In this document: in pieces, positions 15,952 through 50,102 of the stretch
How positions within the stretch are numbered: the first letter of the stretch is position 1
Layout: every line of letters begins with the position of its first letter
Assembly (NCBI GenBank): GCA_002269645.1
Contig: NIVC01002018.1
Coordinates: 62,001 to 126,000 of the forward strand
Direction of reading: 5' to 3'
Origin: Macrostomum lignano
Lineage: Eukaryota
DNA length: 64,000 nucleotides
Made by a program: the position numbers and the translations under genes
Notes under the pieces: generated by a model
What the model was told of the DNA's origin: nothing
The model's database searches: none
Seen by the model: the letters and a program-made list of their open reading frames with translations, nothing else

Positions 15952-18007
15952 TCTAAATATACTAAATCTCTAAGGTTTGTATGCTTGAATGTCCATAACG
16001 CTCTAGAGACTGCAATTCTTCACCGATTTTGATCGCGTTTTCCCCAAAAGATTCAAAATTGTCTGTAAAGAAGACGGTTAAAATTTCTTTAATCTGCTCA
16101 AATGCTAAAGGGATTAAATATTCGAAAAACTGTTTTAAATGGCCTTTTTCAATGCAAATTTTATCAGCCAGAAACTTCACTGCCAATTTTAATTGATTGC
16201 GCCAGAGCCAACTGATAAGAAAACTCACTCCGCTCCACTTAAAGGGGGGCAATAAAAAAATTATTCTGGCTGCTGGCAGCCAGCTCTAATTAGCTAGTCT
16301 AAATATACTAAATCTCTAAGGTTTGTATGCTTGTCCATAACGCTCTAGAGATCGCAATTCTTCACCGATTTTGATCGTGTTTTCGCCAAAAGATTCAAAA
16401 TTGTCTTGAATGAAGACAGTTAAAATTTCTTGTATCTGCTTCAATGCTAAAGGGATTAAATATTCGAAAAACTGTTTTAAATGGCCTTTTTCAATGCAAA
16501 TTTTATCAGCGAGAAACTTCACTGCCAATTTTAATTGATTGCGCCAGAGCCAACTGATAAGAAAACTCACTCCGCTCCACTTAAAGGGGGGCAATAAAAA
16601 AATTATTCTGGCTGCTGGCAGCCAGCTCTAATTAGCTAGTCTAAATATACTAAATCTCTAAGGTTTGTATGCTTGTCCATAACGCTCTAGAGATCGCAAT
16701 TCTTCACCGATTTTCATCGCGTTTTCGCCAAAAGATTTCTAATCAGCCTGGGATTGTATGGTTAAAATTTCTTGTATCTGCTTCAATGCTAAAGGGATTA
16801 AATATTCGAAAAACTGTTTTAAATGGCCTTTTTCAATGCAAATTTTATCAGCGAGAAACTTCACTGCCAATTTTAATTGATTGCGCCAGAGCCAACTGAT
16901 AAGAAAACTCACTCCGCTCCACTTAAAGGGGGGCAATAAAAAAATTATTCTGGCTGCTGGCAGCCAGCTCTAATTAGCTAGTCTAAATATACTAAATCTC
17001 TAAGGTTTGTATGCTTGTCCATAACGCTCTAGAGACTGCAATTCTTCACCGATTTTGATCGCGTTTTCCCCAAAAGATTCAAAATTGTCTGTAAAGAAGA
17101 CGGTTAAAATTTCTTTAATCTGCTCAAATGCTAAAGGGATTAAATATTCGAAAAACTGTTTTAAATGGCCTTTTTCAATGCAAATTTTATCAGCCAGAAA
17201 CTTCACTGCCAATTTTAATTGATTGCGCCAGAGCCAACTGATAAGAAAACTCACTCCGCTCCACTTAAAGGGGGGCAATAAAAAAATTATTCTGGCTGCT
17301 GGCAGCCAGCTCTAATTAGCTAGTCTAAATATACTAAATCTCTAAGGTTTGTATGCTTGTCCATAACGCTCTAGAGATCGCAATTCTTCACCGATTTTCA
17401 TCGCGTTTTCGCCAAAAGATTTCTAATCAGCCTGGGATTGTATGGTTAAAATTTCTTGTATCTGCTTCAATGCTAAAGGGATTAAATATTCGAAAAACTG
17501 TTTTAAATGGCCTTTTTCAATGCAAATTTTATCAGCGAGAAACTTCACTGCCAATTTTAATTGATTGCGCCAGAGCCAACTGATAAGAAAACTCACTCCG
17601 CTCCACTTAAAGGGGGGCAATAAAAAAATTATTCTGGCTGCTGGCAGCCAGCTCTAATTAGCTAGTCTAAATATACTAAATCTCTAAGGTTTGTATGCTT
17701 GTCCATAACGCTCTAGAGATCGCAATTCTTCACCGATTTTGATCGTGTTTTCGCCAAAAGATTCAAAATTGTCTTGAAAGAAGACAGTTAAAATTTCTTG
17801 TATCTGCTTCAATGCTAAAGGGATTAAATATTCGAAAAACTGTTTTAAATGGCCTTTTTCAATGCAAATTTTATCAGCGAGAAACTTCACAGCTAATTTT
17901 AATTGATTTCGCCAGAGCCAACTGATAAGAAAACTCACTGGGCCCCACTTAAAGGGGGGGCAATAAAAAATTATTCTGGCTGCTGGCAGCCAGCTCTAAT
18001 TAGCTAG
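15952..18007 (+). mobile_element. Six head-to-tail ~342-bp non-autonomous mini-Helitrons
   Basis: Units start TCTAAATATACTAA at 15952, 16298, 16640, 16982, 17324, 17666. Each ends with hairpin CTGGCTGC-TG-GCAGCCAG, 10 nt, then CTAG. The first unit is preceded by A. Confidence 0.85.
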
Positions 18008-18644
18008 TCCTATATACTAAAAATGTGATGTCTATATATATATATATATATATGTGATAGATTAGAGAAAAAATGGCTGGACCGATTTTGTTCGAACTTG
18101 CACTGTTCGATCAGAAATTTTCCCGTGACGGTACATGCATTGTGGCTAAGAAATTGCTCGATGCTAAAGGCATTAAATATTCGAAAAACATGCTTTTTTG
18201 CAAAGGTCAAGCAAACTTTTTGACTTGAAATGCATTGTAAGAATGCTAGAGAAAAAACTGACTGGTTGAATTCTGACTCTGAAATAGATTGCATCATAAC
18301 TGAATTGTAACTCCGACTTGAATTGAAAATGCAGTGTGGAAGCGTAGCACCAGACTTGATTTAAATTGCGTAACCATATTGTTAACTGATACTGACTGAC
18401 TGAGAAACTGATTATGTCATAACTGCTTCGTGTGATTTACTCTATGCTTTGATTTAAAAGTGTTGAGTTATATAAGTGCAAAAGTTGATGTTATCAAAAC
18501 GATGAGAGCTAGCCTAAAGGTGAACAAACTGAACTGCTAAATGCAGTGACGATGGTTTGAATTTTCGATGGTTTGAATTTGAGTATAATTTTTTTAATTA
18601 AAGCTTTTCAACGTCAGGAAAACTAAAAGACTTTTTAAAAAGAA

Positions 18645-19530
18645 GCGTCATATAAAAATCGTAGAAGCGTCATGTAAACAATCATAAAAGCGTCATGTAA
18701 AAAATCGTAGAAGCGTCATGTAAAAAATCTTAGAAGCGTCATGTAAACAATCATAGAAGCGTCATGTAAACAATCATAGAAGCGTCATGTAAAAAATCGT
18801 AGAAGCGTCATGTAAAAAATCATAGAAGCGTCATGTAAACAATCATAGAAGCGTCATGTAAACAATCATAGAAGCGTCATGTAAACAATCATAGAAGCGT
18901 CATGTAAACAATCATAGAAGCGTCATGTAAAAAATCATAGAAGCGTCATGTAAACAATCATAGAAGCGTCATGTAAAAAATTGTAGAGGCGTCATGTAAA
19001 CAATCATAGAAGCGTCATGTAAACAATCATAGAAGCGTCATGTAAACAATCATAGAAGTGTCATGTAATAAATCATAGAAGCGTCATGTAAAAAATCATA
19101 GAAGCGTCATGTAAACAATCATAGAAGCGTCATGTAAACAATCATAGAAGCGTCATGTAAACAATCATAGAAGCGTCATGTAAACAATCATAGAAGCGTC
19201 ATGTAAAAAATCATAGAAGCGTCATGTAAACAATCATAGAAGTGTCATGTAAAAAATCGTAGAGGCGTCATGTAAACAATCATAGAAGCGTCATGTAAAC
19301 AATCATAGAAGCGTCATGCAAACAATCATAGAAGCGTCATGTAAAAAATCATAGAAGCATCATGTAAAAAATCATAGAAGCGTCATGTAAACAATCATAG
19401 AAGCGTCATGTAAACAATCATAGAAGCGTCATGTAAACAATCATAGAAGCGTCATGTAAACAATCATAGAAACGTCATATAAAAATCATAGAAGCGTCAT
19501 GTAAAAATCATAGAAGCGTCAAGAAAAAAT
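18645..19530. repeat. 23-bp satellite (AGAAGCGTCATGTAAACAATCAT)n inside B1
   Basis: Direct tandem repeat; same unit as 46845-48975. Confidence 0.95.
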
Positions 19531-20445
19531 CATAGAAGCCTCATTTAAAAACTAATGAAAGTGTCATTTAAAAAATTAAGAAGCGTCACGGTAGAATAAA
19601 AGAAACGTCATGTCAGACATGAAGGGTTCATGTAAAAATTAAATGCAACTATAATGCTGTGCTGGGGAGAAAAACTGAGACGTCAAGGCTCTCAGAGAAT
19701 AACTGAGATTACGGGGGGGGGAGTTTCTGAGATGTCAAAGCAAAAGTCAGAAGCTACTTCAAAGTTCATGTACTTTACTCCATTTTTTTATTGCATTCTT
19801 TGTTGGCTCGTCACGGGGGGGCGCTGATAGAAGAAAAGTCATGTAAAAAATAAAAGTAGCACTATGTATACATAAAAGAAAAGTCATGTCGAAGTTAAAA
19901 GATTCATTTGGGAATTGCTACGATGTCAAAGCTTGGTGGAAATCGTTATAGTGCTGTGATTCTTAAAGAAAGAATCACTAAAATGTTAAGGCTTAGGGGA
20001 GAAGAATTGCTGAGATTTCAAGGCTTTAGGTTGGGTTAAAGTTAGGTTTAGGTCAGGTGTGGGTTGAGGGTTATATTTTATTGGGTTTCAAGGTTAACAG
20101 GGGATTTTTTAGATTTCAAGGTTTATGGGGGCCATTGCTGACATGTCAAGGCTTACGGGGGGAATAGCTAAGATGTCAAGGCTCACGGGGGTATAAATGA
20201 GATTTCAAGGCTAAAGTCAGAAGCTACATGTAGTTTATTGAAAACTTTTTATTACATTATTTGATGCCTCCTCAGGGGAGGGATCGCTGATAAAAAAGCG
20301 TAATGTAAAAAATAAAAGAAGCTTCATGTCGAAGTTAAGAGATTCATTTGGGAATCCCTACGATGTCGAGGCTTGCAAGGAATCGCTATAATGCTGTAGT
20401 AGTGCTATAATGACTCTTAGGGAGAATTACTGAAATTTCAATGCT

Positions 20446-20507
20446 TTAGGGTTAGGTTAGGGTTAGGGTTAGGGTTAGGGTTAGGGTTAGGCTAGGGTTA
20501 GGGTTAG
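20446..20507 (+). repeat. Interstitial (TTAGGG)n tract inside B1
   Basis: About 10 units, some imperfect. Confidence 0.9.
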
Positions 20508-20728
20508 AAGGTTGACAGATATTTTTAGATTTCCAAGGCTTATTGGGGGCATTGCTGAGATGTCAAGGGGGGAAGTTGATATGTTAAAGCTTGTGGGGGG
20601 GATAACTGACATGTCAAGGCTTACAAGGTTTGACAGGAGATTTTTTAAGATTTCAAGGATACATGTAGCTTATTAAAAAAACGTGTATTGCATTTCTTTG
20701 GCTCCCCAACGGGGGGCGTAGATTGCTA

Positions 20729-21112
20729 TCTAATATATCTAAAGTAGCAACCCCCCCTCCACCGGCCCTGTCTGTCTGTGGGTATGTAACAGGTTATCTC
20801 CCAAAAGGCTCAACCGATTTTCTCCGTTTCTTCGCCAAAAGATGTCAAATGTGCCCGGGACGGTACATGTAATTTTATTAAGCTCTAGCTCAATGCTAAG
20901 GGGATTAAATATTCGAAAAACTGTTTTAAATGGCCTTTTTAGTGTATTTTTTTATCAGCCTGCGCGCAGCGAGAAACTTCACAGCCAATTTTAATGATTG
21001 CGCCAGAGCCAACTGATAAGAAAATTCACTTTGCCCCACTGCCCAGATAATTACTCTATTTAACTTGCGTAACCAATTAAGGGGGGGGGGTATAATAAAA
21101 ATTCTGGATGCT
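20729..21112 (+). mobile_element. Truncated Helitron-family element C, related to the 342-bp units
   Basis: Starts TCTAATATATCTAAAG and shares AAGGGATTAAATATTCGAAAAAC...GCCAGAGCCAACTGATAAGAAAA with the mini-units. Breaks off at ATTCTGGATGCT, the first arm of the hairpin. Confidence 0.65.
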
Positions 21113-24100
21113 TCCAATATACTAAAAATCAAAACTTCTCCAATATACTAAAAATCAAAACTATGTACCTATAGGAACCTTCGCTTAACTTCACTCTACA
21201 TGGTCGGAATTTCGTGGGGTTTTCTGCATTCGATGCGTATTGATGGTGCGCTGGTACACAAAATTTTGCTAAGAAATTGCTTTATTTTTTCGGGCTTAAA
21301 TATTCGAAAAACTCGATTTTTACCCCGTTTTTTAAAGTTCAAACAGTTCTTTCCGATTGAGAAGCAGTCTGACTGCCGATGGAATTGTATTGCATCATAA
21401 CTCAGTGCCAACTATAGCATTGGTTCTCTACACTCGCGTGGAGAGCTACAAGCGTTGAAAGGTTGCGCAACACATTTTAGATACTGAAATTGAGGGGCGG
21501 GTGTCGCTATTCAATTAGTCCTGGGCATTGGCTTGGTTGTTAATTTTAATGGATCAACTTGCAGGCCTCTCACTGTAACTGGCGCTGAATGTACACCTTT
21601 ATGAATTTGAATGCTTTAAAGCAGGAATGTTCAATTGTTATTTTTGCTTCGAGTTTTTCACTTTCAGAAGAGAGCCTTGTATTGCTGGAAAGAGCTAGAA
21701 ACGCTGAGTTCGGGAATATAATTTGTTTGCTGAGATTCGAAAAATGAAAAGCACAGCATTAAAAAGAAGATTTCTATGCATTTTACTATATATACTCATT
21801 GTACACTCTCCCATAACGCAAACCCCTACTTTATCGCAACTCCACAATTCAAACCAGCGCCATTGGATTTCAATTTAGATTGCGTAACCATATTGTTGAC
21901 TTTAATTGTTGACTTTAATAATTGAAACTGATATTGACTGCCTGAGAAATTGATTATGTCATAACTTGCTTCGAGCGATTTCTACTCTATGCTTGGAGTT
22001 TTCAGTGTTGAAATATATAAGTGCTAAAATTCATAGTGCTAAATTCAGAGAGCTAGCCTAGAAGTGAACAGACTGAACTGCTAATGCAGCGACGTGGGTT
22101 CGAATTTTTAGAGTGTAAAAGTTTTTTCTTAAAAATTTTAATTTCAAGACAGTTGAAGGAAACTTTAAAAAACGTCAAATAAATCAGATAAAAGAGAAGA
22201 AGCTACGAGCGTTCATGTAGTGTATTCGAAAATTCTTATTAAACTTTAACTTTTGAAAAGGATTATTGCACTAGATAAGAAATTAATTATTGTACGAGTA
22301 CTAGCTGAGGAAATTTTCTTACTATCTTGCTTGGGGTACTTTATATCAGGGGATGCTTGCTATCGGAAGGACGCTTGCTCTTAGGGATGCTTGCTCAGGG
22401 GAGATTGCTGAGATGCCAAGACTTACTGGGGAATTATTCAAATATGCAGGCTTACTGGGGGAATTACTGAGATGTCAAAGGCTTAAAACGGACTTGCTGA
22501 GATGCCAAGGCTTAAGAGGAAATTGCTGAGATTTCAAGGCGTGGGGGAATCTCTGAGATGTCAAGGCTTTGGACGCCTTGATAGCTAAGATTTCAAGACT
22601 TACCGGGGGAATAACTGAGATATAAAGGCTTACGCAGGGAATTACTGAGATGTGAAGGCTTGGGGAGGTATCGCTGAGATAGCAAGGCTTTGGATGGGGA
22701 GAAATTGCTAAGATGTCAAAACTTACTGGAGGAATCACCGAGATATAAAGGCTTACTTGGAGGACTGCTGAGATGTCAAGGCTTGGGGAAAATTTATGAG
22801 ACGTCAAGTCTTGGGGGGTTCCTGAAATTTCAAGTCTTGAGAGCGAATTGCTGAGATAACAAAGCTTAAGAGAGAATTACTGAGGTGTCAAGCTTGGGGG
22901 AAATTGTTGAGATGTCAATTCTTGGGGGGGGATTCTATGGATTGGAGATTCTTTCCACAAGGGCTGCTTCTAATGGATATCTTTAGATAGGTGATTCATT
23001 GGGAAATTCCTTCGATGGGGGATTCTTTCGATGGAGGGTTCTTTGAATGGGGGGTTCTTTAGATGAATGATTCATTCGATAAAGGGATCCTTTTGGATAT
23101 GGCATTGTTTGGACGGGGATTCTTTAGATGAGTCTTCGGATAGGGGTTTCTATAAATGGGAGGTTTTTTGGATGGGGTATTCTTTGCATGTGAGATTCTT
23201 TGTATCGTGGATTCTTTGGATGGGAGATTCAGTTGGGTTAAATTTTATTGTGTAAGAAAACTGTGGTTGGAGTTTGGACGAAAAGCCCAAACGGGGGTTG
23301 GAATTGGCTAGCTGAGGAAATTGTTTCACTAATCTTGCTGGGGGTACTTTCTATCAAGGGATGATTGCTATCAGAAGGACGTTTTCTTTTGGGGGATGCT
23401 TGCTCGGAATAAAATTCTAAGATGTCAAGATTTACAGGGGAATTATTGAGATACATGTATAAAATCTTACCTTAAGAGAGACTTGCTGAGATGCCAAGGC
23501 TTGTGAGGGGAATTGCTGAGATTTCAAGTCTTAGGGGTAAACTGCTGAGATGTCAAGTCTAAGGGGTAAACTGCTGAGATGTCAAGTCTAAGGGGTAAAC
23601 TGCTGAGATGTCAAGTCTAAGGGGTAAACTGCTGAGATGTCAAGTCTTAGGGGTAAACTGCTGAGATGTCAAGTCTTAGGGGTAAACTGCTGAGATGTCA
23701 AGTCTTAGGGGTAAACTGCTGAGATGTCAAGTCTAAGGGGTAAACTGCTGAGATGTCAAGTCTAAGGGGTAAACTGCTGAGATGTCAAGTCTAAGGGGTA
23801 AACTGCTGAGATGTCAAGTCTAAGGGGTAAACTGCTGAGATGTCAAGTCTTAGGGGTAAACTGCTGAGATGTCAAGTCTTAGGGGTAAACTGCTGAGATG
23901 TCAAGTCTTAGGGGTAAACTGCTGAGATGTCAAGTCTTAGGGGTAAATTGCTGAGATGTCTAATCTTGTCGCCGTCGGGGAATTGCTGAGATGCCAAGGC
24001 TTAAGAGGGACTTGCTCAGATGTCAAAGCTTGTGGGGAATCAAGGCTCAGAGGGAGTTCCTGAGATGTCAAGTCTTGGGAAGGAGAATTACTCAGATGTC

Positions 24101-25521
24101 AAGGCTTGGGGAATTTCTGAGATGTCAAGGCTTGGGGGATTGCTGAGATGTGAAGGCTTAAGAAGGAATTGCTGAGGTGTCAAGACTTTGGGAGGGAAAT
24201 CGCTGAGATGCCAATGCTTTGGACGGGGAGAAATTGCTAAGATGTCAAGACTTACTGGAGGAATTACTGAGATATGAAGGCTTACTGGGGGAATTACTGA
24301 TATGTCAAGGCTTGGGGAGGGGAATTACTGAGAAGTCAAGGCTTTGGACGGGGAGAAATTGGTAAGATGTCAAGGCTTGCGCCGGAATTGCTGAGATGTC
24401 AATGCTTGGGGGAAATTTCTGAGGTGTCGAGGCTTGGGGGAACGGCTGAGATGTTAAGCCTTGGGGAAATTCTATGGATTGATGATTCTTTGGATGAGGG
24501 ATGCTTTTAATGTATATCTTTGATTCATTGAGGAATTCCTTCGATGGGGCATTGTTTCGATGGAGGATTTTTTGAATCGGGGGATTCTTTAGATAAAGGA
24601 TTCTTTTGATGGGGGATATTTGGACGGGGGTTTTTTAGATGAGGGGATTCTTTGGCCAAGAATTCTATTGATAGGGGAATTATTTGGATGGGAGATTCTT
24701 TGGATTCTTTGTATGGGGATTATTTGGACGGGGTTCTTTAGATGAGGAAATTCTTTGGCCAAGAATTCTATTGATAGGAGGATTATTTGGATGGGAGATT
24801 CTTTGGATTCTTTGGATGGGGATTTTGTGGATGGGGATTATGATATGAATTATTTGGGTGGATTCTTTGGATATGGATGGATGGAGGATTCTTTGGATGG
24901 GAATTCTGTGGATGAGGATTTATTGAGTAGGGGATTCATTGGATGGGGAATTCTTCAGATGGGAGGATTCCTTGAAAGGGGAATTCTTCGGATCGGTGAT
25001 TCAATCGATGGGGGTTCTTTGGATAAAGGATTCTTTGCATGTGAGATTTTTTGCATCGGAGATTTTGTGGATAGGGAAAACTGTGATTGGAGTTTGGACG
25101 GAAAGCCCCAACGGACTTATTTCTGTAATAAGGGATTCATTGGACGGGGAATTCTTCAGATGGGAGGATTCATTCTTCGGATCGGGGATTCTATCAATGG
25201 GATGGGATGGGATGGGACGGGAAGGATTGGTATTCTTTGCATGTCAGATTCTATGGATGGGCGACTCATTAAATAGGGAATTCTACAGATAGAGGATTCC
25301 TTGAATGGGGAATTCTTCGGATCGGGGATTCTGTCGATGGGGGGTTCTTTGTATGGGATTCTTTGGATGAGGGTTTTTTGCATGTGAGATTATTTGCATC
25401 AGGGACTTTATGGATTAGAGATTCTTTGGATGGGGGGTTGAGTTGGGTGAATTTCTTTTGCGTGGGAAAACTTTGGTAGGAGTTCTGACGGAAAGCCCCA
25501 ACGGGGGTTGGAATTGGCTAG
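21113..25521 (+). mobile_element. Non-autonomous Helitron D with two 3' termini
   Basis: Duplicated 5' end TCCAATATACTAAAAATCAAAAC. Hairpin AAGCCC(C/A)-AAC-GGGGGTT + GGAATTGG + CTAG ends at 23311 and again at 25521. Contains a 29-bp array at 23525-23960 and degenerate GGATTCTTTGGATGGG arrays. Confidence 0.7.
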
Positions 25522-28500
25522 TATATACTAAAAATGAAATGTCTGTAACTATCTAGCTATGCGATAGATTTCAGAAAAAGTGGCTCAACCGATTTTCTTC
25601 AAACTTGCACCATTTGATCAGAAATTTTCCTGGGACGGTACATGCATCTTGGCTAAGAAATTGCTCAATTTTAAAGGGATTAAATATTCGAAAAACATGC
25701 TTTTTTGCAAAGGTCAAGCAGCTCTTTCGACCTGAAATGAATTGTAAAAATGCGAAAGAAAAAACTGACTGACTGAATTTCAATTGTGATAAAGATTGCA
25801 TCACAACAAGATGAAAACAGTGTCGAAAAAATGCACACAAGACTTGATTGTAATTGCGTAACCATATTGCTAACTTGAATTGAGACTGATACTGGCTGAC
25901 TGAGAAATTGATTATGTCATAACTTTTTACTCTAACTGACTTGCTATAAGAATTGAATTATAAGGGCCACAATACATGTTCTCCAATTGAAAAGAGATAG
26001 CCAAGATGGGAACAGACTGGACTGCTAATGTAGCGACCTGGGTTCGAATCTTAGTAGTGCAAAAACATTTTTTTATTAAAACACTTTAAAACACAAAATG
26101 CTAAACATAAAAGAAGCGCAATGTCAAATATAAAAGAGCCACCATGCCAAACAAAAAAAAAGTGCCACCATGTAGAACACAGAAGAGACACCATGTCAAA
26201 CATAAAAGAGCCACCATTTCAAACATAAAAGAGCCACCATGTGAAACATATACGTGACTCAATGTCAAACATTAAAGAGCCACCATGTCAAACATTAAAG
26301 AGCCACCATGTCGAACATAACAGAGACAACATTTCAAACATAAAAGAGCCATCATGTCAAACATAAAAGAGCCACCATGTCGAACATTAAAGAGCCACTA
26401 TGTCAAACATAACAGAGACAACATTTCAAACATAAAAGAGCCATCATGTCAAACATTAAAGAGCCACCATGTCGAACATTAAAGAGCCACCATGTTGAAC
26501 ATTGAAGAGCCACCATGTCAAACATTAAAGAGCCACCAAGTAAAATATAAAAGAGCTACCATGTCAAACATAAAAGAGCCACCATGTCGAACATAACAGA
26601 GACAACATTTCAAACATTTAAGAGCCACCATGTCAAACATAAAAGAGCCACCATGTCGAGCATAAAAGAGCCACCATGTCAAACATAAAAGAGCCACCAT
26701 GTCAAACATTAAAGAGCCACCATGTCAAACATTCAAGAGAAACCATGTCGAACATAACAGAGACAACATTTCAAACATTTAAGAGCCACCATGTCAAACA
26801 TAAAAGAGCCACCATGTCGAGCATAAAATAGCCACCATGTTGAACATTAAAGAGCCACCATGTCAAACATTAAAGAGCCACCATGTCGAGCATAAAAGAG
26901 CCACCATGTCGAACATAAAAGAGCCACCATGTCAAACATTAAAGAGCCACCATGTCAAACATTCAAGAGACACCATGTCGAACATAACAGAGACAACATT
27001 TCAAACATTTAAGAGCCACCATGTCAAACGTAAAAGATCTACCATGTCAAACATAAAAGAGCCATCATGTCAAACATAAAAGAGCCACCATGTCGAACAT
27101 TAAAGAGCCACCATGTTCAACATTAAGGAGCCACCATGTCAAACATAAAAGAGCCACCATGTCAAACATTAAAGAGCCACCATGTCAAACATTAAAGAGC
27201 CACCATGTCAAACATTCAAGATCAGCCATGTCGAACATAAAAGAGCCACCATGTAAAATATAAAAGAGCTACCATGTCAAACATAAAAGAGCCATCATGT
27301 CAAACATAAAAGAGCCATCATGTGAAACATATACGTGACTCAATGTCAAACATTAAAGAGCCACCATGTCAAACATATACGTGACTCCATGTCAAACATT
27401 AAAGAGCCACCATGTCAAACATATATGACTCCATGTCAAACATATATGACTCCATGTCAAACATATATGACTCCATGTCAAACATTAAAAATAAAAAAGA
27501 CACCATGTCACACATAAGGGAGCCACCATATCAAACATAAAAGAGCTACCATGTCAAAACATTATTGAGCCATTATGCCCAATATAAAAAGACACAATTT
27601 CAAATGTAAAAGGGCCGCCATGTCAAACATAGAAGAGCCACCATGTCAAACATAGAAGAGCCACCATGTCAAACAACTAAGCCACCATGTCAAACATAAC
27701 AGAGACACCATTTCAAACGTAAAAGGGCCGCCATGGCAAACATAGAAGAGCCACCATGTCAAACATTAAAGAGCTACCATGTCAAACACAAAAGGGCCAC
27801 CACGTCCAACATTAAAGAGCTATCATGTCAAACACAAAAGAGCTACCATGTCAAACATTAAAAAGCCACTTTTTTAAACAAAAAAGAGACACCATTTCAA
27901 ACATAAAAGAAGTGTCATGCCAAACAAAATGAAACCATTATAAAGCTAAGGAAATTGTTGCACTAGCTACTTGTTCTCTGGTGGATGCTTGCTATTTAAG
28001 GATGGATACTTGCTATCAGGGGATGCTTGCTCTTGGGGGTGGAGAGTACTTGCTATCTGAGAGGGGGTTGCTAGATATCTATAAGGTATCTTTGTATCCA
28101 GGTTATGCTTGCTATCAGGGGTTGCTTGCTGTCTGGGGGATGCTTGCTATCTGGGGGGGGGATGCTTGCTATCTAGGGGATGCTTGCTATCTGCGGGATG
28201 CTTGCTATCTGGGGGATGCTTGCTATCTGCGGGATGCTTGCTATCTGGGGGACGCTTGCTATCTGGGGTCTGGGGAATGCTTGCTATCTGGGGATGCTTG
28301 CGATCTGGGGGATGCTTGCTATCTGAGGAATGCTTGCTATCTGGGGGATGCTTGCTATCTGCGGGATGCTTGCTATCTGGGGGATGCTTGCTATCTGGGG
28401 TCTGGGGGAATGCTTGCTATCGGGGGGATGCTTGCAGTCTGGGGGATGCTTGCTATCTGGGGATGCTTGCCATCTGGGGGACGCTTGCTATCTGGGGTCT

Positions 28501-28912
28501 GGGGGAATGCTTGCTATCTGGGGATGCTTGCGATCTGGGGGATGCTTGCTATCTGAGGAATGCTTGCTATCTGGGGGATGCTTGCTATCTGCGGGATGCT
28601 TGCTATCTGGGGATGCTTGCTATCTGGGGTCTGGGGGAATGCTTGCTATCGGGGGGATGCTTGCAGTCTGGGGGATGCTTGCTATCTGGGGATGCTTGCT
28701 ATCTGGGGGATGCTTGCAGTCTGGGGGATGCTTGCTATTTGGGGATCAATGCTTGAATGTTGTCTGAGGATGCTTGCTGTCTTGGGATGTTTTGTTTTTA
28801 AGAGGGAATGTCTGTTGTTTTTTCTGAAGGCTTTATTTCGCTGTCTATTTGTTATTTGTAAAAAACAAGGATTCTATCCAGATGTCCCCCATCGGGGGGC
28901 AAAGATTGCTAG
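25522..28912 (+). mobile_element. Non-autonomous Helitron E
   Basis: Starts TATATACTAAAAATG (TC not present) directly after D's CTAG and has the family 5' region. Contains a 23-bp array (AAAGAGCCACCATGTCAAACATA, ~26100-27920) and an ~18-bp array (GGGGGATGCTTGCTATCT, ~28000-28780). Ends GTCCCCC-ATC-GGGGGGC + AAAGATTG + CTAG. Confidence 0.75.
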
Positions 28913-39281: not shown

Positions 39282-39772
39282 GTAAGTCGCACCGAGGGCG
39301 AGCTAAGTCGCACCGAGGGCAAGCTAAGTCGCAGCAGGACCGAGCTAAGTCGCATCGAGGGCGAACTAAGTCGCACCGAGCGAGAGCTAAGTCGCACTAA
39401 GGGCGAGCTAAGTCGCACCGAGGGCAAAATAAGTCGCACCGAGCGAGAGCTAAGTCGCACTAAGTCGCAGCAGGACCGAGCTAAGTCGCACCGAGGGCGA
39501 GCTAAGTCGCAGCAGGACCGAGCTAAGTCGCACCGAGGGCGAGCTAAGTCGCAGCAGGACCGAGCTAAGTCGCACCGAGGGCGAACTAAGTCGCACCGAG
39601 CGAGAGCTAAGTCGCACTAAGTCGCAGCAGGACCAAGCTAAGTCGCACCGAGGGCGAGCTAAGTCGCACCGAGCGAGAGCTAAGTCGCACCGAGGGCGAG
39701 CTAAGTCGCAGCAGGACCGAGTAAGTCGCAGCAGGGCCGAGGTAAGTCGCAGCAGGACTGAGTTAAGTCGCA
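39282..39772. repeat. Subterminal ~21-bp array built on TAAGTCGCA in the hAT
   Basis: Over 20 copies of TAAGTCGCA, plus single copies at about 39128, 44872 and 44918. Confidence 0.85.
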
Positions 39773-40122
39773 GAGCATCTTTAGGATTATTAGGTTAGGA
39801 TTAGTTTAGGATGAATTTAATGTATCACTTACTAGGGTGTAGGCTACGTGTGCATTAACGCATCAATTTGAAAAATTAAGAATTACGAAGCCAGAAATGG
39901 CTAAGGAATAGAAATAGGGATAGAATAACTTATAAGCAGTAATTTTTCAGCCCTATTACAATTGCAAATCATACTTTTAATAATATTTAATTAGCAAATT
40001 AAAACTGCAAGATTCTAACGGTCTTATATATGAACTTAGAAGAACTGTAGTCTTAATGATTATGCATGTACCATTGTAATAATTGATTAAAATTGTAGCA
40101 GATTAAAACTGATAAAAAACTT

Positions 40123-43100
40123 TTAAAATAGTCCACTTAGCAAATCAGAATCAGAATCTTTATTTTCCTCGTCTACGTTGGATTCTTTTTGCCGTTGACC
40201 TCCAGGAGCATCAGAACGCCAGTGTTTTTTCAGCCAATCATTGACATAAATATCCGGCTTAAATTTCATCAGCGGAGGCCCATTTATTCGAATCCGTAGT
40301 AGATGCTCCAATGTTTTTGGTGCCAAGCGTGTTCTCCTGTCATAGGCAATGTGCTTATAGATAGAAAACCCTCTTTTAGCCTCAGCTGATGATATTGGCA
40401 AAGTTAACACAACCATAATTAGATTCTTTATTCTGGGCAGCCATTCAACAGTTCTTGTCTCTAGAAAGTGACTCCAAAATTTCACCGGACCTTTGCCTTT
40501 GTAGGCACAGAAGTCAACACTATGCGAAGTGATCAAACTTTTTAGGAGTAGACCGAACTGACCAGAGATTGTCCTTTCTGTAGCGCGTTCTGAAGCATCT
40601 GCATCTCTAGAGTCTGAATCAGAAAGATGGTCCTCTGTTTCAGATTCAGAGCTGTCATCTTCCATTCCAAACCGTCTAGCAAGAGGTATGATTCTCGAAC
40701 TGTATGTAAAGACAGTATGTAATGTTTCAGCATTAGGCAATAACACTGGGTTGAGCACATTAAATATTGAGTAGTCATCCTCAGGAAAATAATTACGCAG
40801 CTGATCAATTATGCTATCAATGATTCGACTGCGAATCTCATCCAGTGCTGGATAAGCTCCCATGTCAACAACACTGCCACGTCCACTAGCATCAAATAAT
40901 CTATTTCTTAGAGATCTGTCTGCAGCAGAACCTGGTTGCTTCAACTCAAACCTCTCTGTTGGATCGCTGCTTCCAGGGCCGGAAGGACAAGCAAAGTTAG
41001 AATAAGATAGGTCTCTTGTGTGACATCCTGAATGGTATTCCAGCTGCGGATATCCATCTGCAGTTCCCAAAACTCGACGACACTTGCAGGAAGCCAAAAA
41101 GTCCACAATGCGAGGACCATTGTTCGTTTTTAAGGTTTCTAGTGAATGGATAAGGTTAGTGTGGCGTTCTTGCAAGCCAATAAATGTACCCTTGGCTCTT
41201 TGAAACTGCAAGGACTCAAATTCCAGTAATTTTAGAATGTCCATGAGAAATAGATGTAATGAATAATACCGGACATTTTGCAATGTTTTCAATAATCCAG
41301 AGGCAGTTGCTTTACTTTCGTCATCAAAGCCTGAGGAAGGTGATTTGATATTTTCTAAATTTGTCAGAAGCAAGTAGTATGACTTTCGAATCACATCAAG
41401 AGCAGACACTTCCGATGCAACCCACCTGATACGATATATTCTTTTTAATTCATAGAAAACCAAGTTGAGTGCTTCCGAAGTTTGTGCCAAAGATGCCTTA
41501 CGTTTAACAGCGTGGCTCATATAAAATTTGTGTAGAGAATTTATATTCTTATCGAGATGTTGCATAAATGGGAAGATTTCAAAGGCATGATAGATTGAAA
41601 GTTCTAACTTATGCGCTGCACAATGGTGCTGAAAAAATTGTTTGCTAGCCCAAGGCCTCAGTTGACTTATTAATCCCACTCGACTTCCTGTCATTACGGA
41701 TGCACCATCAGTTGTCACCCCCCATAGCCTTCGTTTGATTTCATCTTCTAGCTTGTCATCCGAAAATAAACGGATGAGAAGTTCATAAATGCTTCGTCCA
41801 GTCTCTACTTCAGTCAGACGTTTAAACCGATAAAAAAACATCAAAGGTTGGCTGTTTTCAAGAACTCTGAAGTATATCATGACGTAGCTGTTTGAATGAA
41901 TATCAGACGTTGTATCTAGTACAATAGAAATCGGAAGGTTGTCAGCACTTTTAATGTAATTCACAAATGTCCGATGCATTGTATTACTGATTGATTCCAC
42001 CATTGCTGCGGCACTTTTGCGATGCTTATGATGGCTCCCCATATCCAACCCATTTTTTACTTGTAAATCAATCATATTTGGATGAGCACTGAATGGAATA
42101 TTAGATTTGACTTCGGCGAAAAAACTGTTGTCAAAACTCGGGCTGTTATTTCATCTCGTTTAGTTTTAGCTAGTCTAGCGGCCTCATTCATCTGTTTGAG
42201 TTGCTTTGCAAGAACTGAAGTATGTTTTTCCTTCATCCACTTTATGGCGTCACTGTGAAGTGTATTTGATGAATGTTCCTGTAGTTTTCTTCGTACGCTA
42301 TCTTTTGCATGACCTTTGGGAATGTAGCCTTGTTCTGTTGCAAAAGTTAACTTACGTTGGCTCTCTAGATTTGTCTCCTTTTTCTTATGTGCATTCAAAA
42401 ATTTTCTGCAGATCCGACATTGTATTCCAGATCTTGATAGATCTTCGGTGTTTTGAACATATTGAAACCATGTCTTCATTTCTTGTGACACAAATTTTCT
42501 TGAAAATGATCTGCAATGGTCAAATTAGAGAATATTTTGGGATTTGGACTATTTGTGAGTATCTAAAAGCAATATGCTAATAAGTGCAATACACAATACA
42601 CTATACATTAATTTACAGTTCGTCAGTTTCCATTTACTTACTGTGACTGGTGCATCTCCAAAGAATGTAACCACTCCTCTCGAAAACCAGATGTATCCTC
42701 CCAGTCCTTTTTAGGGAAAACTTCAATATTTTCGCCCATCATAGAGGAAGACGAGGGCTTTGATGCTGAAGTGGCTAGACATGCGTCTGCAGATGTGCTT
42801 ATGCATGGTATTTTTCTTTGCGATGGCCCTGCTTCTGCAGTATTTACTTGTACTATTTCAACATCACCTGAACCCCTTGAGTCGCTCGAATCTAAATCAA
42901 CAATAGGACTTTGGCAAAGTGATCGTTTCGTTGATTGTCTTTGAATATTTACTTGCCTAATAATTTCCACTTGTAGTTTGCTTGTTTGCTGGTCATTCTC
43001 CAACAACTCTCTTCTTTCCTGTACATTTGCAGCAGAGCAAAAATTAGAAGTTTCTGCAGCAGCAGTTTGAACAGCATGATCTCGATTAGCTGCTATTTGC

Positions 43101-44229
43101 TCTGAAAATTCATAGGACCTGGCCAATTCACTACGGTGTGAGCTTTCAGAACATGGAGCTGGAGCAGGAGCTAGTCGCATTTCGATTCTTTCTGTTGCTG
43201 ATGAAGCAGATGCTAATGCTGAGTCTGCCAATGTACATGCTTCTCTTGAAGGTGTATTTATGATGGCTTCAATATTGTCCTCTAAAATCCAATGAGCACC
43301 TGAGCAGTCATTTTATCTACCTGGAGTCAACTGTCCAAGTTTCCACCTTGTAAAAAGCAAAGGCTTTCGTAACTCACTGCTGGATTCAGGGCACCGGTTT
43401 ATTGAATAGTCCTCATGACCAAGTTCATCCCATTCTCTTGCTGGCTTTAAGATGTAGTTGGGCTTGTCTTTTAGCCTACGATAAATGGACTCAAAAATGT
43501 GCACCTGTTATTGTTCCTAATAATTTCAGCTAATGAGTTATCAATGATAATTTTATCTTCATAAACAGGTCTTCTTTGTGTTGCATGCATTTTAGCTAGT
43601 CGCAGTTTTCCAATGCTACTGGCAGTTGTGGAACTTGAACTGTCCGATTCTGATCTAGAAAAGTCTCGTTGATACAAGAGAATAATGGCCATAGCACTTT
43701 TACCATTCCCATTCTTTAATGCATTTGGTTCTGTTGGAATTGTCTTACTAGCAGACTTGAAAAAATCAATGATGGATGACTGCGATGATCTACTAGGAGC
43801 GGAACTTGGCAGCCCATGTCTAGTTTTTCCCTGATACCCAATAGATGTATCGGTAAAAAACATATCTGCTGCTTCCTGCTTCCCTTTTGATGCAATAACA
43901 AAGAAACTGCTGTCCGTTTTGAAGCCCGAGGACCGATAGAAGTCAGCAGAAAATGAAACCACAGGTCGTCTAAAATCGCCGCTATATTCTTGAACTCCAA
44001 TCAGAAGAAAATCATGGAGTCTCACTGGCACTGATCCTAATAGCATTGCAGTTGTAGAACAAACTTTCTTTAGCTCAATGAACTCTGAAAATTCTTGAGA
44101 TCCAATATTAGGCTCATCAGTATTTAACTCATTTATAACAATTGAGCACTCACTCTCAGCTAGAATACCATTGATAGCTAGGATGCCACTTAGAATCAGT
44201 AGGCAAAGACAACTAAGGCTGTACATCAT
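40123..44229 (-). pseudogene. Disrupted hAT transposase gene (ZNF862/KIAA1586-like) with an N-terminal signal-peptide/lamin-tail-like module
   Basis: Core motifs IVLDTTSD, TTDGASVM, CAAHKLEL, RWVA, and dimerization region FWSHF...SSAEAKRGFS. Intron 42511-42641 (GTAAGT...TTGCAG) joins the upstream ORFs in phase. Lesions: frameshift near 43504, TAA at 43313-43315, frameshift in a T-run near 42120, and K at the usual catalytic E (40375-40377). Confidence 0.8.
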
Positions 44230-46234
44230 TCTGTGAAAGATTAAGTCGAGTATATGATTTTGGTGATAAAATAAAATTGATTTATGAGTATTACTATATA
44301 AATAAAACATTTAAAAGCCCTTACCTTTACCAATTCATGTACAGAAAGTAAGTGTAAATACAACCAATTGCCTTGGTAGTTTAGTTATATGCTCGTATCA
44401 GATGCAGGCAGACAGCATAGGCTGCCAAGGTGCTATAAGTTAAGGTTAACTTTCACTATTTGGCTTTACAGACTGCTTTTATCGCTGCATGCATTGACTT
44501 AGCCTTAGCTTGTGCCATCATACTCATACAGCTATATATACATATGTATCTCTGCCACTCCCCACTTTTGCAACCTTACACTGTACAATCATGCCTAAAA
44601 CACTCCGTGTCAAGTGTACTGTTCTAGTGCCACATGGGGTACAAATACGATAAGGAATGACAAGAGTCAAAACCATACATGCACAATAGTTGGCCGATAT
44701 GGACGACTGATTTGGCGGCCAACCAAGGTAAGTTGCAAAAATGCCCACCCAAATAAATACCAAAGTAGTATTAAGTAGCTGACGAAGCATTTTGCCTTAA
44801 TAAAGACAGTCATAGTTACTCCTGCCGTTTCGCCAAAGTTGCGTTAATTTTGCTTTCAGGTTTTTTCATGTAAGTCGCATTTTTGGCCGAAAACTACGTC
44901 GCATTTTTGTTAAAACTAAGTCGCACGGCCGACCAAATTTTGGAGGTTGCGCATGTATGTTTCTGTCGAAAAAATAATTTAACAAACGAAAGAGGAAAAT
45001 CGCTGAATTCTCTACATTTGGAGTTTGTTTTCTTATAATGTCATAATGATATGTATTTGTATAATAATAATTTTGCCAGATGCTCACTCAATTGTTGTTG
45101 TTTTGTTGTTTTCAATGTGTTTTGCAATTGAAGAAATACAAAAAATGTTTCAGTGGACAAAGACCAGTCCCATGATTCATGAATCTGCACACCTGGTACC
45201 TGCCTTATTCTATTTTAAAAGATAAATTGTCAGGCATGCATTTATAATGAAGAATGATACAAAATGGATTACTAAGAAAAGAGGTCAGATGAGAAATAGG
45301 ATCTGATCAGAACTGGAATCATTAAGAAAAAGAAAGGAGATTAGAAATTGATCCATTGATATTTAATTAGCCATTGATATGGATGAGGGTGAGCTAACCA
45401 TTTTGAACTATCAAAATGGATCTAATTTGAAATAGACTTTTATGTCATATAGGATTTGATTCAAAATAAGATTTGACAATGTGAATGAGGCATATAAGAA
45501 AAGAGAAGTCTGCTGAGGAGTGTGACTAGAAAAGAAAGGGGGAATTTAGCATGATAATATATATCATATATCATGCCTATATATAGCCAATGTTAGCTTT
45601 ATTAAAAGTGTCAAACCAAAGGTCGAAGGATGTAGCTCCAGTTGCTTTTGCAAAGTCCATTCACAATGAGATAGCTGCATTGAACTGACTCTTTAAGTCA
45701 TTTATTATAATAAGAGGGGCCTCATTCAAGGGCAATAGTTGCAATGCTGAGCTACTTATTGTTCGGAACATTGCAGTCGCAGTTAGTACGATGAGCAGGG
45801 CTAAGAAATTCACTTACAAATGAAGAAAGTAAAAAATTTTTCGGGATGTGTATAAAACTGTAGTACACATGAGCAATACAAGCAACAAGAAAATCGGAAT
45901 AAAGCAAGTCATTTCTCGGAAAGTCGCAATTTCTTGGAATATTATTTAATTTATTTTCAGTAACAACTAAAAAAGTGATCTCAACAGTTTTATAAACTAA
46001 ATAAATAAAATAATTTTTATCAAACACGTTGACATATACAGGGCTCTAAACTAAAAAACTGTAAAAAGTTGATAGTTTTGTTTTACCTAAAATGCATTAT
46101 TAACGATCTCCAAAAATTCCTATTTTAAGCTTAAGCTTAAGAAAGACACTTAAAGTACTCCTGCTAAAAGGTATATTATATTAGACGAATATTAATTATT
46201 TCTGCTCCCCGAAGGGGGGCAAAACTTTAGCTAG

Positions 46235-49200
46235 TCCTATATACTAAAAATGAAAATCTTGTTTGTGCGCAATCGATTTTAGCAAAAATGGCTCATCCGA
46301 TTTTGTTCAAACTTGCACCATTCGATCAGAAATTTTTCCGTGACTGTACATGTATCTTGGCTAAGAAATTGCTAAATGCTAAAGGCATTAAATATTCGAA
46401 AAACATGCTTTTTTGCAAAGGTCAAGCAAACTTTTTGACTTGAAATGCATTGTAAGAATGCTAGAGAAAAAACTGACTGGTTGATTCTGACTCTGAAATA
46501 GATTGCATCATAACTGAATTGTAACTCCGACTTGAATTGAAAATGCAGAGTGGAAGCGTAGCACCAGACTTGATTTAAATTGCGTAACCATATTGTTAAC
46601 TGATACTGACTGACTGAGAAACTGATTATGTCATAACTGCTTCGTGTGATTTACTCTATGCTTGGATTTTAAAGTGTTGAATTATATAAGTGCAAAATTT
46701 GATGTTATCAAAACGATGAGAGCTAGCCTAGAGGTGAACAAACTGAACTGCCAAATGCAGCGACGATGGTTCGAATTTTCATAGAGTATAATTTTTTTAA
46801 TTAAAGCTTTTCATCGTCAGGAAAACTAAAAGACTTTTTAAAAAGAAGCGTCATGTAAAAATCATAGAAGCTTCATTTAAAAAATCATAGAAGCGTCATG
46901 TAAACAATCATAGAAGCGTCATGTAAACAATCATGGAAGCGTCATGTAAAAAATCATCGAAGCGTCATATAAAAATCATAGATGCGTCATTTAAAAAATC
47001 ATAAAAGCGTCATATAAAAATAATAAAGGGGCATATAAAATATCATAGAAGCGTCATGTAAACAATCATAGAAGCGTCATATAAAAATCATAGAAGCGTC
47101 ATGTAAAAATCATAGAAGCGTCATGTAAACAATCATAGAAGCGTTTTTTTAAAAAATCATAGAAGCGTCATGTAAACAATCATAGAAGCGTCATGTAAAA
47201 AATCATAGAAGCCTCATGTAAAAAATCGTACAAGCGTCATTTAAAAATCATAGAAGCGTCATGTAAACAATCATAGAAGCGTCATGTAAACAATCATAGA
47301 AGCGTCATGTAAACAATCATAGAAGCGTCATGTAAAATATCATAGAAGCGTCATTGAAAAAATCATAGAAGCGTCAAGTAAAAAATCATAGAAGCGTCAT
47401 GTAAAAAATCGTAGAAGCGTCATGAAAAAAATCGTAGAAGCGTCATGTCAAAATCATAGAAGCGTCATGTAAACAATCATAGAAGCGTCATGTAAACAAT
47501 CATAGAAGCGTTTTTTTTAAAATCATAGAAGCGCCATGTAAACAATCATAGAAGCGTCATGTAAAAAATCATAGAAGCCTCATGTAAAAAATCATAGAAG
47601 CGTCATGTAAACAATCATAGAAGCGTCATGTAAAAAATCATAGAAGCCTCATGTAAAAAATCATAGAAGCGTCATGTAAACAATCATAGAAGCGTCATGT
47701 AAACAATCATAGAAGCGTCATGTAAACAATCAAAGAAGCGTCATGTAAACAATCATAAAAGCGTCATGTAAAAATCATAGAAGCGTAATTTAAAAAATCA
47801 TAGAAGCGTCATGTAAAAAATCATAGAAGCGTCATGTAAAAAATCGTAGAAGCGTCATGTAAAAAATCGTAGAAGCGTCATGTAAGAATCATAGAAGCGT
47901 CATGTAATGAATCATAGAAGCGTCATGTAAACAATCATAGAAGCGTCATGTAAAAAATCATAGAAGCCTCATGTAAAAAATCGTACAAGCGTCATTTAAA
48001 AATCATAGAAGCGTCCTGTAAAGAATCATAGAAGCGTCATGTAAACAATCATAGAAGCGTCATGTAAACAATCATAGAAGCGTCATGTAAACAATCATAG
48101 AAGCGTCATGTAAACAATCATGGAAGCGTCATGTAAAAAATCATAGAAGCCTCATGTAAAAAATCATAGAAGCGTCATGTAAACAATCATAGAAGCGTCA
48201 TGTAAACAATCATAGAAGCGTCATGTAAACAATCAAAGAAGCGTCATGTAAACAATCATAAAAGCGTCATGTAAAAATCATAGAAGCGTAATTTAAAAAA
48301 TCATAGAAGCGTCATGTAAAAAATCGTAGAAGCGTCATGTAAAAATCATAGAAGCGTCATGTAAACAATCATAGAAGCGTCATGTAAACAATCATAGAAG
48401 CGTCATGTAAAAAATCATAGAAGCCTCATGTAAAAAATCGTACAAGCGTCATTTAAAAATCATAGAAGCGTCATGTAAACAATCATAGAAGCGTCATGTA
48501 AACAATCATAGAAGCGTCATGTAAAAATCATAGAAGCGTCATGTAAACAATCATAGAAGCGTCATGTAAACAATCATAGAAGCGTCATGTAAAAAATCAT
48601 AGAAGCGTCATTTGAAAATCATAGAAGCGTTATTTAAAAAATCATAGAAGCGTTATTTAAAAAAATCATAGAAGCGTCATGTAAACAATCATACAAACGT
48701 CATGTAAACAATCATAGAAGCGTCATGTAAAAAATCATGGAAGCGTCATGTAAAAAATCATAGAAGCGTCATATAAAAAGCATAGAAGCGTCATGTAAAC
48801 AATCATAGAAGCGTCATGTAAAAAATCATGGAAGCGTCATGTAAAAAATCATAAAAGCGTCATGTAAAAATCATAGAAGCGTCATATAAAAAGCATAGAA
48901 GCGTCATGTAAACAATCATAGAAGCGTCATGTAAAAAAATCATAGGAGCGTCATGAAAAAATCATAGAAGCCTCATTTAAAAACTAATGAAAGTGTCATT
49001 TAAAAAATTAAGAAGCATCATGGTAGAATAAAAGAAGCGTCATGTCAGACATGAAGGGTGTCATGTAAAAATTAAATGCAGCTATAATGCTGTGCTGGGG
49101 AGAAAAACTGAGACGTAAAGGCTCTCAGAGAATAACTGATCAGAGAATAACTGAGATTACGGAGGGGGGGGGGTTTCTGAGATGTCAAAGCAAAAGTCAG

Positions 49201-50034
49201 AAGCTACTTCAAAGTTCATGTACTTTACTCAATTTTTTATTGCATTCTTTGTTGGCTCGCCACGGGGGGCGCTGATAGAAGAAGAGTCATGTAAAAAATA
49301 AAAGTAGCACTATGTATACATAAAAGAAAAGTCATGTCGAAGTTAAAAGATTCATTTGGGAATTGCTACGATGTCAAAGCTTGGTGGAAATCGTTATAGT
49401 GCTGTGATTCTTAAAGAAGGAATCACTAAAATTTCAAGGCTTAGGGGAGAAGAATTGCTGAGATTTCAAGGCTTTAGGTTGGGTTAAAGTTAGGTTTAGG
49501 TCAGGTTTGGGTTGAGGGTTATATTTTATCGGGTTTCAAGGTTAACAGGGGATTTTTTAGATTTCAAGGTTAATGGGTGCCATCGCTGACATGTCAAGGC
49601 TTACAAGAAGCTTCATGTCGAAGTTAAGAGATTCATTTGGGAATCCCTACGATGTCGAGGCTTGCAGGGAATCGCTATAATGCTGTAGTAGTGCTATAAT
49701 GACTCTTAGAGAGAATTACTGAAATTTCAATGCTTTAGGGTTAGGGTTAGGGTTAGGGTTAGGGTTAGGGTTAGGGTTAGGGTTAGGGTTAGGCTAGGGT
49801 TAGGGTTAGAAGGTTGACAGATATTTTTAGATTTCCAAGGCTTATTGGGGGCATTGCTGAGATGTCAAGGGGGGAAGTTGATATGTTAAAGCTTGTGGGG
49901 GGGGGAATTACTGACATGTCAAGGCTTACAAGGTTTGACAGGAGATTTTTTAAGATTTCAAGGATACATGTAGCTTATTAAAAAAACGTGTATTGCATTT
50001 CTTTGGCTCCCCAACGGGGGGCGTAGATTGCTAG
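46235..50034 (+). mobile_element. Non-autonomous Helitron G (sister of B1)
   Basis: 5' TCCTATATACTAAAAATG after F's CTAG; 3' GCTCCCC-AAC-GGGGGGC + GTAGATTG + CTAG. Contains a 23-bp array at 46845-48975 and a TTAGGG tract at 49735-49809. Confidence 0.88.
49735..49809 (+). repeat. Interstitial (TTAGGG)n tract inside G
   Basis: Nine perfect units at 49735-49788, then imperfect units. Confidence 0.95.
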
Positions 50035-50102
50035 TCTATACTAAAAACGATAAAGGCAGAGCCATAAATACAAGCTCCTAGAACAAAAAAGGTCATGGCC
50101 TA

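Follow-up and report, generated by a model that had tools for sequence, protein, structure and literature searches.

Organisation of the Helitron chain

We analysed a window of 64,000 nucleotides (nt) from Macrostomum lignano (contig NIVC01002018.1, positions 62,001 to 126,000, forward strand; all coordinates below count from the first letter of this window). Minisatellites are abundant along the whole length of the window, and its centre is taken up by a chain of Helitrons. The chain is ~34 kb long and comprises some fourteen Helitrons of five to six related families, all in one orientation and lying end to end. It occupies the 3′ intergenic space between two convergent genes, one with a RING-finger ORF and the other FkbM-methyltransferase-like. 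The limits first assigned to the chain, 15952–50034, proved too short, with an orphan copy of a 5′ end at each flank; once these boundary stubs are counted, the chain extends over ~15928–50055. From left to right, the window passes from host sequence ending in GCAGCAA to stub A, A1–A6, B1, C, stub D, D1, D2, E, F, G and the right stub. A slash in the sequences below marks a joint, and the features are as follows.

15928–15951, + strand: stub A, a 24-nt degenerate copy of the A-type 5′ end, entered at GCAGCAA/TC and followed directly by A1
15952–18007, + strand: A1–A6, six non-autonomous Helitrons of 342–346 bp, head-to-tail
18008–20728, + strand: B1, a non-autonomous Helitron of the family of G, with a 23-bp satellite, a (TTAGGG)n block and a CCCC/GGGG hairpin; ends in CTA
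20729–21112, + strand: C, a diverged relative of the A type (80–83% identity) with its own 5′ end, TCTAATATATC; 3′-truncated
21113–21138, + strand: stub D, the exact first 24 nt of the D 5′ end plus TC, followed directly by D1
21139–23311, + strand: D1, a complete D-type non-autonomous Helitron with a weakened 3′ hairpin (CCC...GGG) and its own GCTAG
23312–25521, + strand: D2, a 5′-truncated D-type copy with an intact 3′ end, abutting the CTAG of D1
25522–28912, + strand: E, a non-autonomous Helitron with 23-bp and 18-bp satellites; begins TATATAC
28913–46234, + strand: F, a putatively autonomous Helitron of 17,322 bp, or 11,419 bp without a nested hAT transposon
46235–50034, + strand: G, a second B-family copy with a canonical GCTAG 3′ end
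50035–50055, + strand: right stub, TCTATACTAAAAACGATAAAGG, 5′-end-like and nearest to the 5′ end of E; unique DNA lies beyond it

Profile hidden Markov models of the ends located 13 5′ ends and 12 3′ ends; every one is on the + strand and lies between 15952 and 50034. Scanning the remainder of the window on both strands with the same profiles gave nothing comparable to the Helitron ends of the chain, and a scan for fossil junctions within the elements found none. The single orientation reported in the initial annotation is therefore borne out, with 13/13 units on the + strand. Thirteen units in the same orientation, with the ten exact joints described below, lie beyond what chance or passive pile-up can produce.

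That annotation had also counted at least six element types. The presence of several families stands, and our own count is five to six. B1, E, F and G have a common 5′ sequence of about 300–500 nt at 83–93% identity, and the 5′ ~500 nt of E is 93% identical to F, while D forms a separate type in the family comparison. Internal minisatellites are present in every unit except A and C.

Junctions and termini

Nine junctions, at 16297/8, 16639/40, 16981/2, 17323/4, 17665/6, 18007/8, 28912/3, 46234/5 and 50034/5, had been described as a hairpin followed by CTAG/TC, and all nine were found at those positions. Their pattern is a short hairpin-(11–14 nt)-GCTAG/TC(Y)(W)ATATACTAAA. Two further junctions are variants, as previously noted: 20728/9 reads CTA/TC, without the final G, and 25521/2 reads CTAG/TATATAC, which arose either by loss of 3 nt (TCC) or, from an end of the TCTATAC type, by C>A substitution. 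One junction had escaped earlier attention, that of D1 against D2 at 23311/2. Joints are exact and without spacer at 10 of 13 positions, and at seven junctions the elements joined belong to different families.

The terminal motifs themselves are confined to these sites. The sequence TATACTAAA has 13 exact occurrences on the + strand, each at a predicted 5′ end, and none on the − strand, and the junction pattern CTAGTCYWATATAC was observed three times against 0.05 expected from shuffles. A TC start is present in 12 of the 13 full 5′ ends (the exception is E, with TA), and 11 of the 12 3′ ends finish with CTAG (the exception is B1, with CTA). The 5′ and 3′ ends are unrelated to each other and there are no terminal inverted repeats. 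Hairpin stems of 5–8 bp stand 11–14 nt from the 3′ end in A, B1, D2, E, F and G, and the hairpin at 23311, in D1, is weakened. The hairpins have modest fold z-scores (−1.6 to −1.8), in line with the shortness of their stems. Because the 5′ ends have TC(Y)(W)ATATACTAAA in common, and the 3′ ends a hairpin and GCTAG, one enzyme could plausibly serve all units. At its outer limits the chain begins at host A/TC on the left and finishes on the right at CTAG/T, where the T lies within the 5′-end-like stub.

Classification of the chain units

Helitrons of the Helitron1 type begin with 5′-TC and finish with CTRR-3′, carry a hairpin about 10–15 nt before the 3′ end, and insert between a host A and T without a target-site duplication. 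Their transposase, RepHel, is a two-tyrosine HUH nuclease fused to a Pif1-like helicase of superfamily 1B. Helentrons and Helitron2 elements have short asymmetric terminal inverted repeats and insert between T and T, and in Helentrons an apurinic/apyrimidinic (AP) endonuclease follows the helicase. Judged by their termini, hairpin, lack of inverted repeats and RepHel content, together with the host A at the left boundary, the chain units class as canonical Helitrons (Helitron1 type), not Helentrons. Assignment to Helentron or Helitron2 was considered and ruled out by the absence of inverted termini and by the absence of an endonuclease domain from the RepHel model.

The locus is thus a genuine head-to-tail series of canonical TC...CTAG Helitrons in M. 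lignano. The structural reading of the initial annotation, which was of several canonical Helitron families lying terminus to terminus in the same orientation with one coding-competent RepHel element among them, agrees with our analysis.

The A array, element C and the orphan 5′ ends

The six A units start at 15952, 16298, 16640, 16982, 17324 and 17666, and each spans from TCTAAATATAC at the start to an 8-bp hairpin and then CTCTAATTAGCTAG at the end. Sorted by subtype, they run a b c a c b′ from left to right. A1 and A4 are identical (apart from 4 bp extra), as are A3 and A5, with 0 mismatches in both pairs, while different subtypes are separated by 13–27 mismatches, and like never adjoins like. 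This order is not obtainable by one tandem duplication. Unlike neighbours and identical units that are not adjacent argue against a simple rolling-circle concatemer.

Element C was previously thought to be interrupted at 21112/3. It stops in the loop of its 3′ hairpin, and its missing ~23 terminal nt are absent from the entire window, so that C is truncated.

Three short 5′-end copies stand without the remainder of an element. Stub A matches the A 5′ end without difference over its first 12 nt, and beyond them the alignment requires two indels. Stub D and the start of D1 form a repeat of period 26 with a 100% match. For the right stub, significance depends on the 11-mer TATACTAAAAA standing exactly at the junction, the profile score alone being weak. 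The similar lengths of the stubs (21–26 nt) suggest a defined abortive or near-end insertion process. The empty site that had been proposed for this locus, ...CTTCTA/TCTATACTAAAAACG..., has Helitron-derived sequence on either side, and that prediction is therefore wrong.

The larger non-autonomous elements

B1 and G are 93–95% identical outside the satellite, and their neighbours differ on both sides. Being of the same family with different neighbours, they represent separate arrivals and not a segmental duplication. Both carry a block of 10–12 telomere-type TTAGGG repeats, at 20446–20507 in B1 and 49735–49809 in G, respectively 221 and 225 nt upstream of the 3′ end. The presence of the block in both copies suggests that the B family takes interstitial telomeric repeats around the genome.

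What had been described as a single D element is two units, D1 then D2, each with its own 3′ end. The start of D2 is the equivalent of D1 position ~22305, and the similarity between the two is 72–79%.

Element F and its RepHel gene

F starts with TCTAATATAC and ends with CCCCGAAGGGGGG-N12-GCTAG. Its coding region and the transposon nested within it are laid out as follows.

30603–36858, + strand: RepHel gene model, 9 exons, 1717 aa by predicted splicing
30603–30943, 31131–31715, 31791–32375, 32513–33309 and 33567–33909, + strand: RepHel exons 1–5
34105–34423, 34507–35528, 35612–36008 and 36094–36858, + strand: RepHel exons 6–9
39065–44959, − strand: nested hAT of 5,895 bp, with 14-nt perfect terminal inverted repeats (CATACATGCGCAAC) and an 8-bp target duplication (TTTCTGTC)

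No single open reading frame (ORF) crosses RepHel in F. Instead, stop-free blocks match blocks that are conserved at 75–87% in contigs of a related element, and each gap between them holds one frame-preserving GT-AG intron of good consensus. Predicted splicing gives 1717 aa without a stop. The intact RepHel of the initial annotation holds in the form of this nine-exon gene model, and not as one ORF, since eight GT-AG introns have to be removed.

The predicted protein matches the Pfam families Helitron_like_N (6e-51), PIF1 (6.5e-64), Pif1_2B and UvrD_C_2. It carries the HUH motif (HVH) at 773, YVIKY at 914, Walker A (GTGKT) at 1288 and Walker B (VWDEISM) at 1365, and the later helicase motifs are all present. 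An N-terminal region, with an OTU-like DGNCFF at 139, is weakly similar to OTU proteases (PDB matches at 1e-3 and a Pfam OTU match below threshold). A domain search of the model found no endonuclease domain, and the protein ends soon after the helicase C-terminal domain. From this complement of domains and motifs, F can plausibly supply RepHel transposase for all units.

One helicase exon is 100% identical to a M. lignano UniRef entry over 65% of the query, and the next nearest matches are also M. lignano helicase entries, which places the window in the nuclear DNA of this flatworm. A helicase encoded on NIVC01000059.1, also from M. lignano, is 53% identical. Seven Logan contigs (L002–L008; runs SRR316283xx–SRR316284xx) encode a related RepHel with 82% amino acid identity in the helicase exon; the exon blocks of F are kept in these contigs and its intron 7 is absent. 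Downstream of the helicase the same contigs have an RPA-like OB-fold ORF, unlike F, in which we looked for an RPA-like gene and found none. The ends of the present family were found neither in NIVC01000059.1 nor in the Logan RepHel contigs. Scans for the 5′-end motif in metagenome and prokaryote collections returned chance matches only, with no further similarity; the DNA collections scanned do not include the M. lignano genome.

Intron 4 of RepHel contains 2.6 copies of a 23-bp repeat (33422–33480), which by eye is the reverse complement of the 23-bp satellite at 29579–30130, between the 5′ end of F and the start of RepHel.

The nested hAT has transposase ORFs at 40123–44310 with a hAT dimerisation domain, and subterminal TAAGTCGCA repeats. 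It sits in the non-coding 3′ part of F, downstream of RepHel, leaving the gene and the termini untouched, and is not part of the Helitron system.

Origin of the chain

Helraiser provides the biochemical reference for the joints seen here. Its circles have a precise CTAG/TC junction and are competent for transposition, and the transposase cleaves their plus strand alone, exactly at this joint (PMC4778049, PMC5876387). The left terminal sequence (LTS) of Helraiser is essential, and its hairpin acts as a termination signal, the loss of which leads to read-through (PMC4778049, PMC5876387). The junction in the Helraiser circle and CTAG/TC in the chain are chemically the same. The former is episomal, was formed by a single element and was studied in human cells, whereas the junctions of the chain are chromosomal, and their use as targets is proposed here by analogy.

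The explanation that we favour, with evenly balanced confidence, is that serial terminus-directed integration built the chain, RepHel using the boundaries of resident 5′ ends as targets. RepHel would cut the top strand directly 5′ of TC, at the LTS, both at the start of transposition and at the opening of the circle, and the base ahead of the cut would be either the host A or the G of CTAG. The 5′-end boundary of an element already resident in the chromosome would present the same substrate, and could thus supply the target nick to which an incoming element is ligated. After such an insertion the boundary upstream of the newcomer would be intact and a fresh CTAG/TC junction would stand downstream, so each insertion would renew and multiply the target and the chain would grow in one orientation without spacers. 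Less exact events near a resident 5′ end may leave stubs of 21–26 nt, and read-through of a weak 3′ hairpin may fuse neighbours such as D1 and D2. A cut at the CTAG of one element would also attach the enzyme to the next 5′ end, so that termination on one element could launch the next.

Terminus targeting with a self-growing landing site, the causal reading of the initial annotation, fits the exactness of 10 of the 13 junctions, the different neighbours of B1 and G, the interleaved A subtypes, the stubs at the boundaries, the host A/TC on the left, the shared ends and the open RepHel of F. It also fits Helraiser biochemistry, the abutting Helitrons of bats, the insertion preference of maize Helitrons and the duplicated 5′ ends of Fusarium. 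More tentatively, RepHel may prefer any compatible resident Helitron 5′ boundary, such that a seed element or a ~24-nt stub nucleates a multi-family array within which relay launching occurs; we regard this wider proposal as possible but doubtful.

Several points weigh against terminus-directed integration. The inner junctions are G/T and not the canonical A/T target. At three junctions the joint is imprecise, C lacks 23 nt, and the right stub has a weak 5′-end profile score. The identity of A1 with A4 and of A3 with A5 could stem from unequal exchange or gene conversion. The anatomy of the chain would fit more than one order of arrival, and attraction by either the 5′ or the 3′ end. Both the activity and the splicing of RepHel are predictions, and the evidence for targeting is indirect.

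Composite mobilisation is an unlikely alternative origin, in which read-through at 3′ ends (end bypass) fused neighbours, and blocks of the chain, or the whole of it, arrived as large composites. Such read-through is experimentally established for Helraiser, and the D pair looks the part, the 3′ hairpin of D1 being degenerate and D2, with a good 3′ end, adjoining it without spacer. Stub A with A1, and stub D with D1, likewise resemble the Fusarium composites with 'two 5′ termini'. However, most 3′ ends in the chain have an intact hairpin and GCTAG, no block recurs in the window, and the neighbours of B1 and G differ. Moreover, read-through accounts for joint travel, but not for the first exact adjacency. 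For heterologous concatemers mobilised together, the alternative given in the initial annotation, there is no clear evidence for or against: only D1 with D2, and the pairs of a stub and an element, look like co-mobilised units. Alongside terminus-directed integration, composite units were probably added when D1 was read through into D2 and when an outer 5′ stub served for mobilisation, as in the model put forward for the duplicated 5′ ends of Fusarium (PMC5148889).

Less likely still is that rolling-circle concatemers integrated and that unequal crossing-over then expanded and shuffled their units. This has been proposed as the origin of plant arrays, and the A array has much of the expected form, being of one family, head-to-tail and of exact unit length, with A1=A4 and A3=A5 identities such as a recent duplication would give. 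A concatemer would consist of one family and its neighbours would be identical or most similar, whereas neighbouring A units always differ, and no one tandem duplication would arrange them as a b c a c b′. The seven heterologous junctions rule out replication of one circle as their source. Homologous exchange between the shared 5′ regions would produce chimeric elements and not exact end-to-end joints. Within a chain built by terminus-directed integration, unequal exchange or conversion may still have shaped the A array.

It is very improbable that the chain is an assembly artefact, with long reads mis-joined at shared termini. The termini are indeed short shared repeats, and the identical A pairs make copy number and order prone to error, but heterologous junctions share only ~5 nt (GCTAG) on one side and ~15 nt on the other, which is too short to mis-join long reads. 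The idiosyncratic imprecise junctions, the stubs and the truncated C would not be expected from joined consensus ends. Finally, passive pile-up by coincidental adjacency in a tolerated, gene-poor region might be entertained in an intergenic space within a window filled with minisatellites and transposon debris, but it is effectively refuted, since random insertion would strike interiors in both orientations and no Helitron here lies inside another.

Flanking sequence

Two single-exon ORFs of 409 and 366 aa lie to the right of the chain on the − strand (50103–51332 and 61448–62548). They are 98.4% identical over 992 nt, have N-terminal hydrophobic segments and are distant relatives of the FkbM-family methyltransferases. 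The stop codon of the first lies 68 nt from the end of the chain, on the strand opposite to it. We considered a complete element 'H' with a captured gene at this position and rejected it, with termini absent outside the chain. The ORF at 50103–51332, which is full-length and has a tandem paralogue, is most simply host DNA. An indexed search with the 409-aa ORF gave no match, and exact look-ups of both ORFs gave nothing.

A 31-bp minisatellite at 51786–52463, outside the chain, is ~68% like the D2 satellite (23478–24051) in the same orientation, and shorter related blocks are present in D1, B1 and G. It is the only hint of Helitron-derived sequence beyond the right end of the chain, and may be what is left of another Helitron, or an array that was seeded independently. 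On the left, a 270-bp inverted repeat of 86% identity (2909–3176 and 14693–14962) encloses ~11.5 kb that hold a RING-finger ORF (12548–13597) and several minisatellites; the pair may be the ends of a large transposon or an inverted duplication.

A scan of the flanks for a hairpin with CTRR/T found no other Helitron families. Rfam and tRNA scans gave nothing, and the spurious ORFs of the A units had no database match.

Relation to other Helitrons

The usual account of the Helitron target is an AT dinucleotide in AT-rich DNA. For the Helitron arrays of centromeres, subtelomeres and Y chromosomes, the origin is argued between concatemers and recombination.

Several components of the present chain have counterparts elsewhere. 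In Myotis bats one Helitron's 5′ end may abut a second Helitron's 3′ end (Grabundzija et al. 2016, PMC4778049), an arrangement from which, in the authors' view, composite elements and new 3′ ends arise (PMC4778049). The abutting bat elements likewise have TC and CTAG termini with a subterminal hairpin (PMC4778049). They are, however, individual pairs among 395 surveyed copies, whereas here ~14 units of five to six families run uninterrupted around a coding-competent element. Tandem arrays of a single Helitron family are known from plant centromeres, bat, Drosophila and Hydractinia subtelomeres (cited in PMC5876387, PMC5148889, PMC11934779). As in the A array, their units are head-to-tail with precise junctions of the right terminal sequence (RTS) with the LTS. 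Those arrays are homogeneous and are credited to rolling-circle concatemers, while this chain is heterologous and its A subtypes alternate.

Maize Helitrons show a preference for insertion near or inside other Helitrons (PMC3288121). In Fusarium, the first 31–85 nt of the Helitron 5′ end are duplicated, which was put down to self-insertion near the 5′ end (PMC5148889), and three tandem Helitron copies occur in Metarhizium (Chellapan et al. 2016, PMC5148889). The FoHelis of Fusarium oxysporum resemble the chain in having short duplicated 5′ ends directly upstream of a full element, and cases in which a Helitron inserted at, or close to, the 5′ end of another are described as well (PMC5148889). 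They differ in their non-canonical termini and in the length of the duplicates (31–85 nt against 21–26 nt here), and no multi-family chain has been described for them. Internal tandem repeats like those of B1, D, E, F and G are found in rice Mothra (PMC4683698) and oyster Helentron-N (PMC7492417). Both were reported as dispersed copies; those of oyster, being Helentrons, have other ends and include an endonuclease.

Earlier publications thus already report Helitrons that abut in pairs, homologous arrays and duplicated 5′ ends, and the idea of terminus targeting is less new than the initial annotation implied. Our literature search found no report of a long multi-family Helitron chain joined by exact junctions, nor any of Helitrons in Macrostomum. 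The chain is an extreme case of the known landing of Helitrons at each other's ends.

Concatemer formation cannot yield a long heterologous chain joined so exactly, and the chain would therefore isolate a separate process, end-directed integration. As an unusually clean natural example, the chain makes end-directed integration testable in the cell and in vitro systems of Helraiser. If general, such integration would explain Helitron nesting, the formation of composite elements and new ends, and the way in which non-autonomous families stay near a source of transposase. Were the wider proposal of 'homing plus relay launching' true, non-autonomous Helitrons would cluster beside their driver, and satellites borne by Helitrons would build long arrays. 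The present account is also a first curated one of the Helitron families of M. lignano, a model for regeneration.

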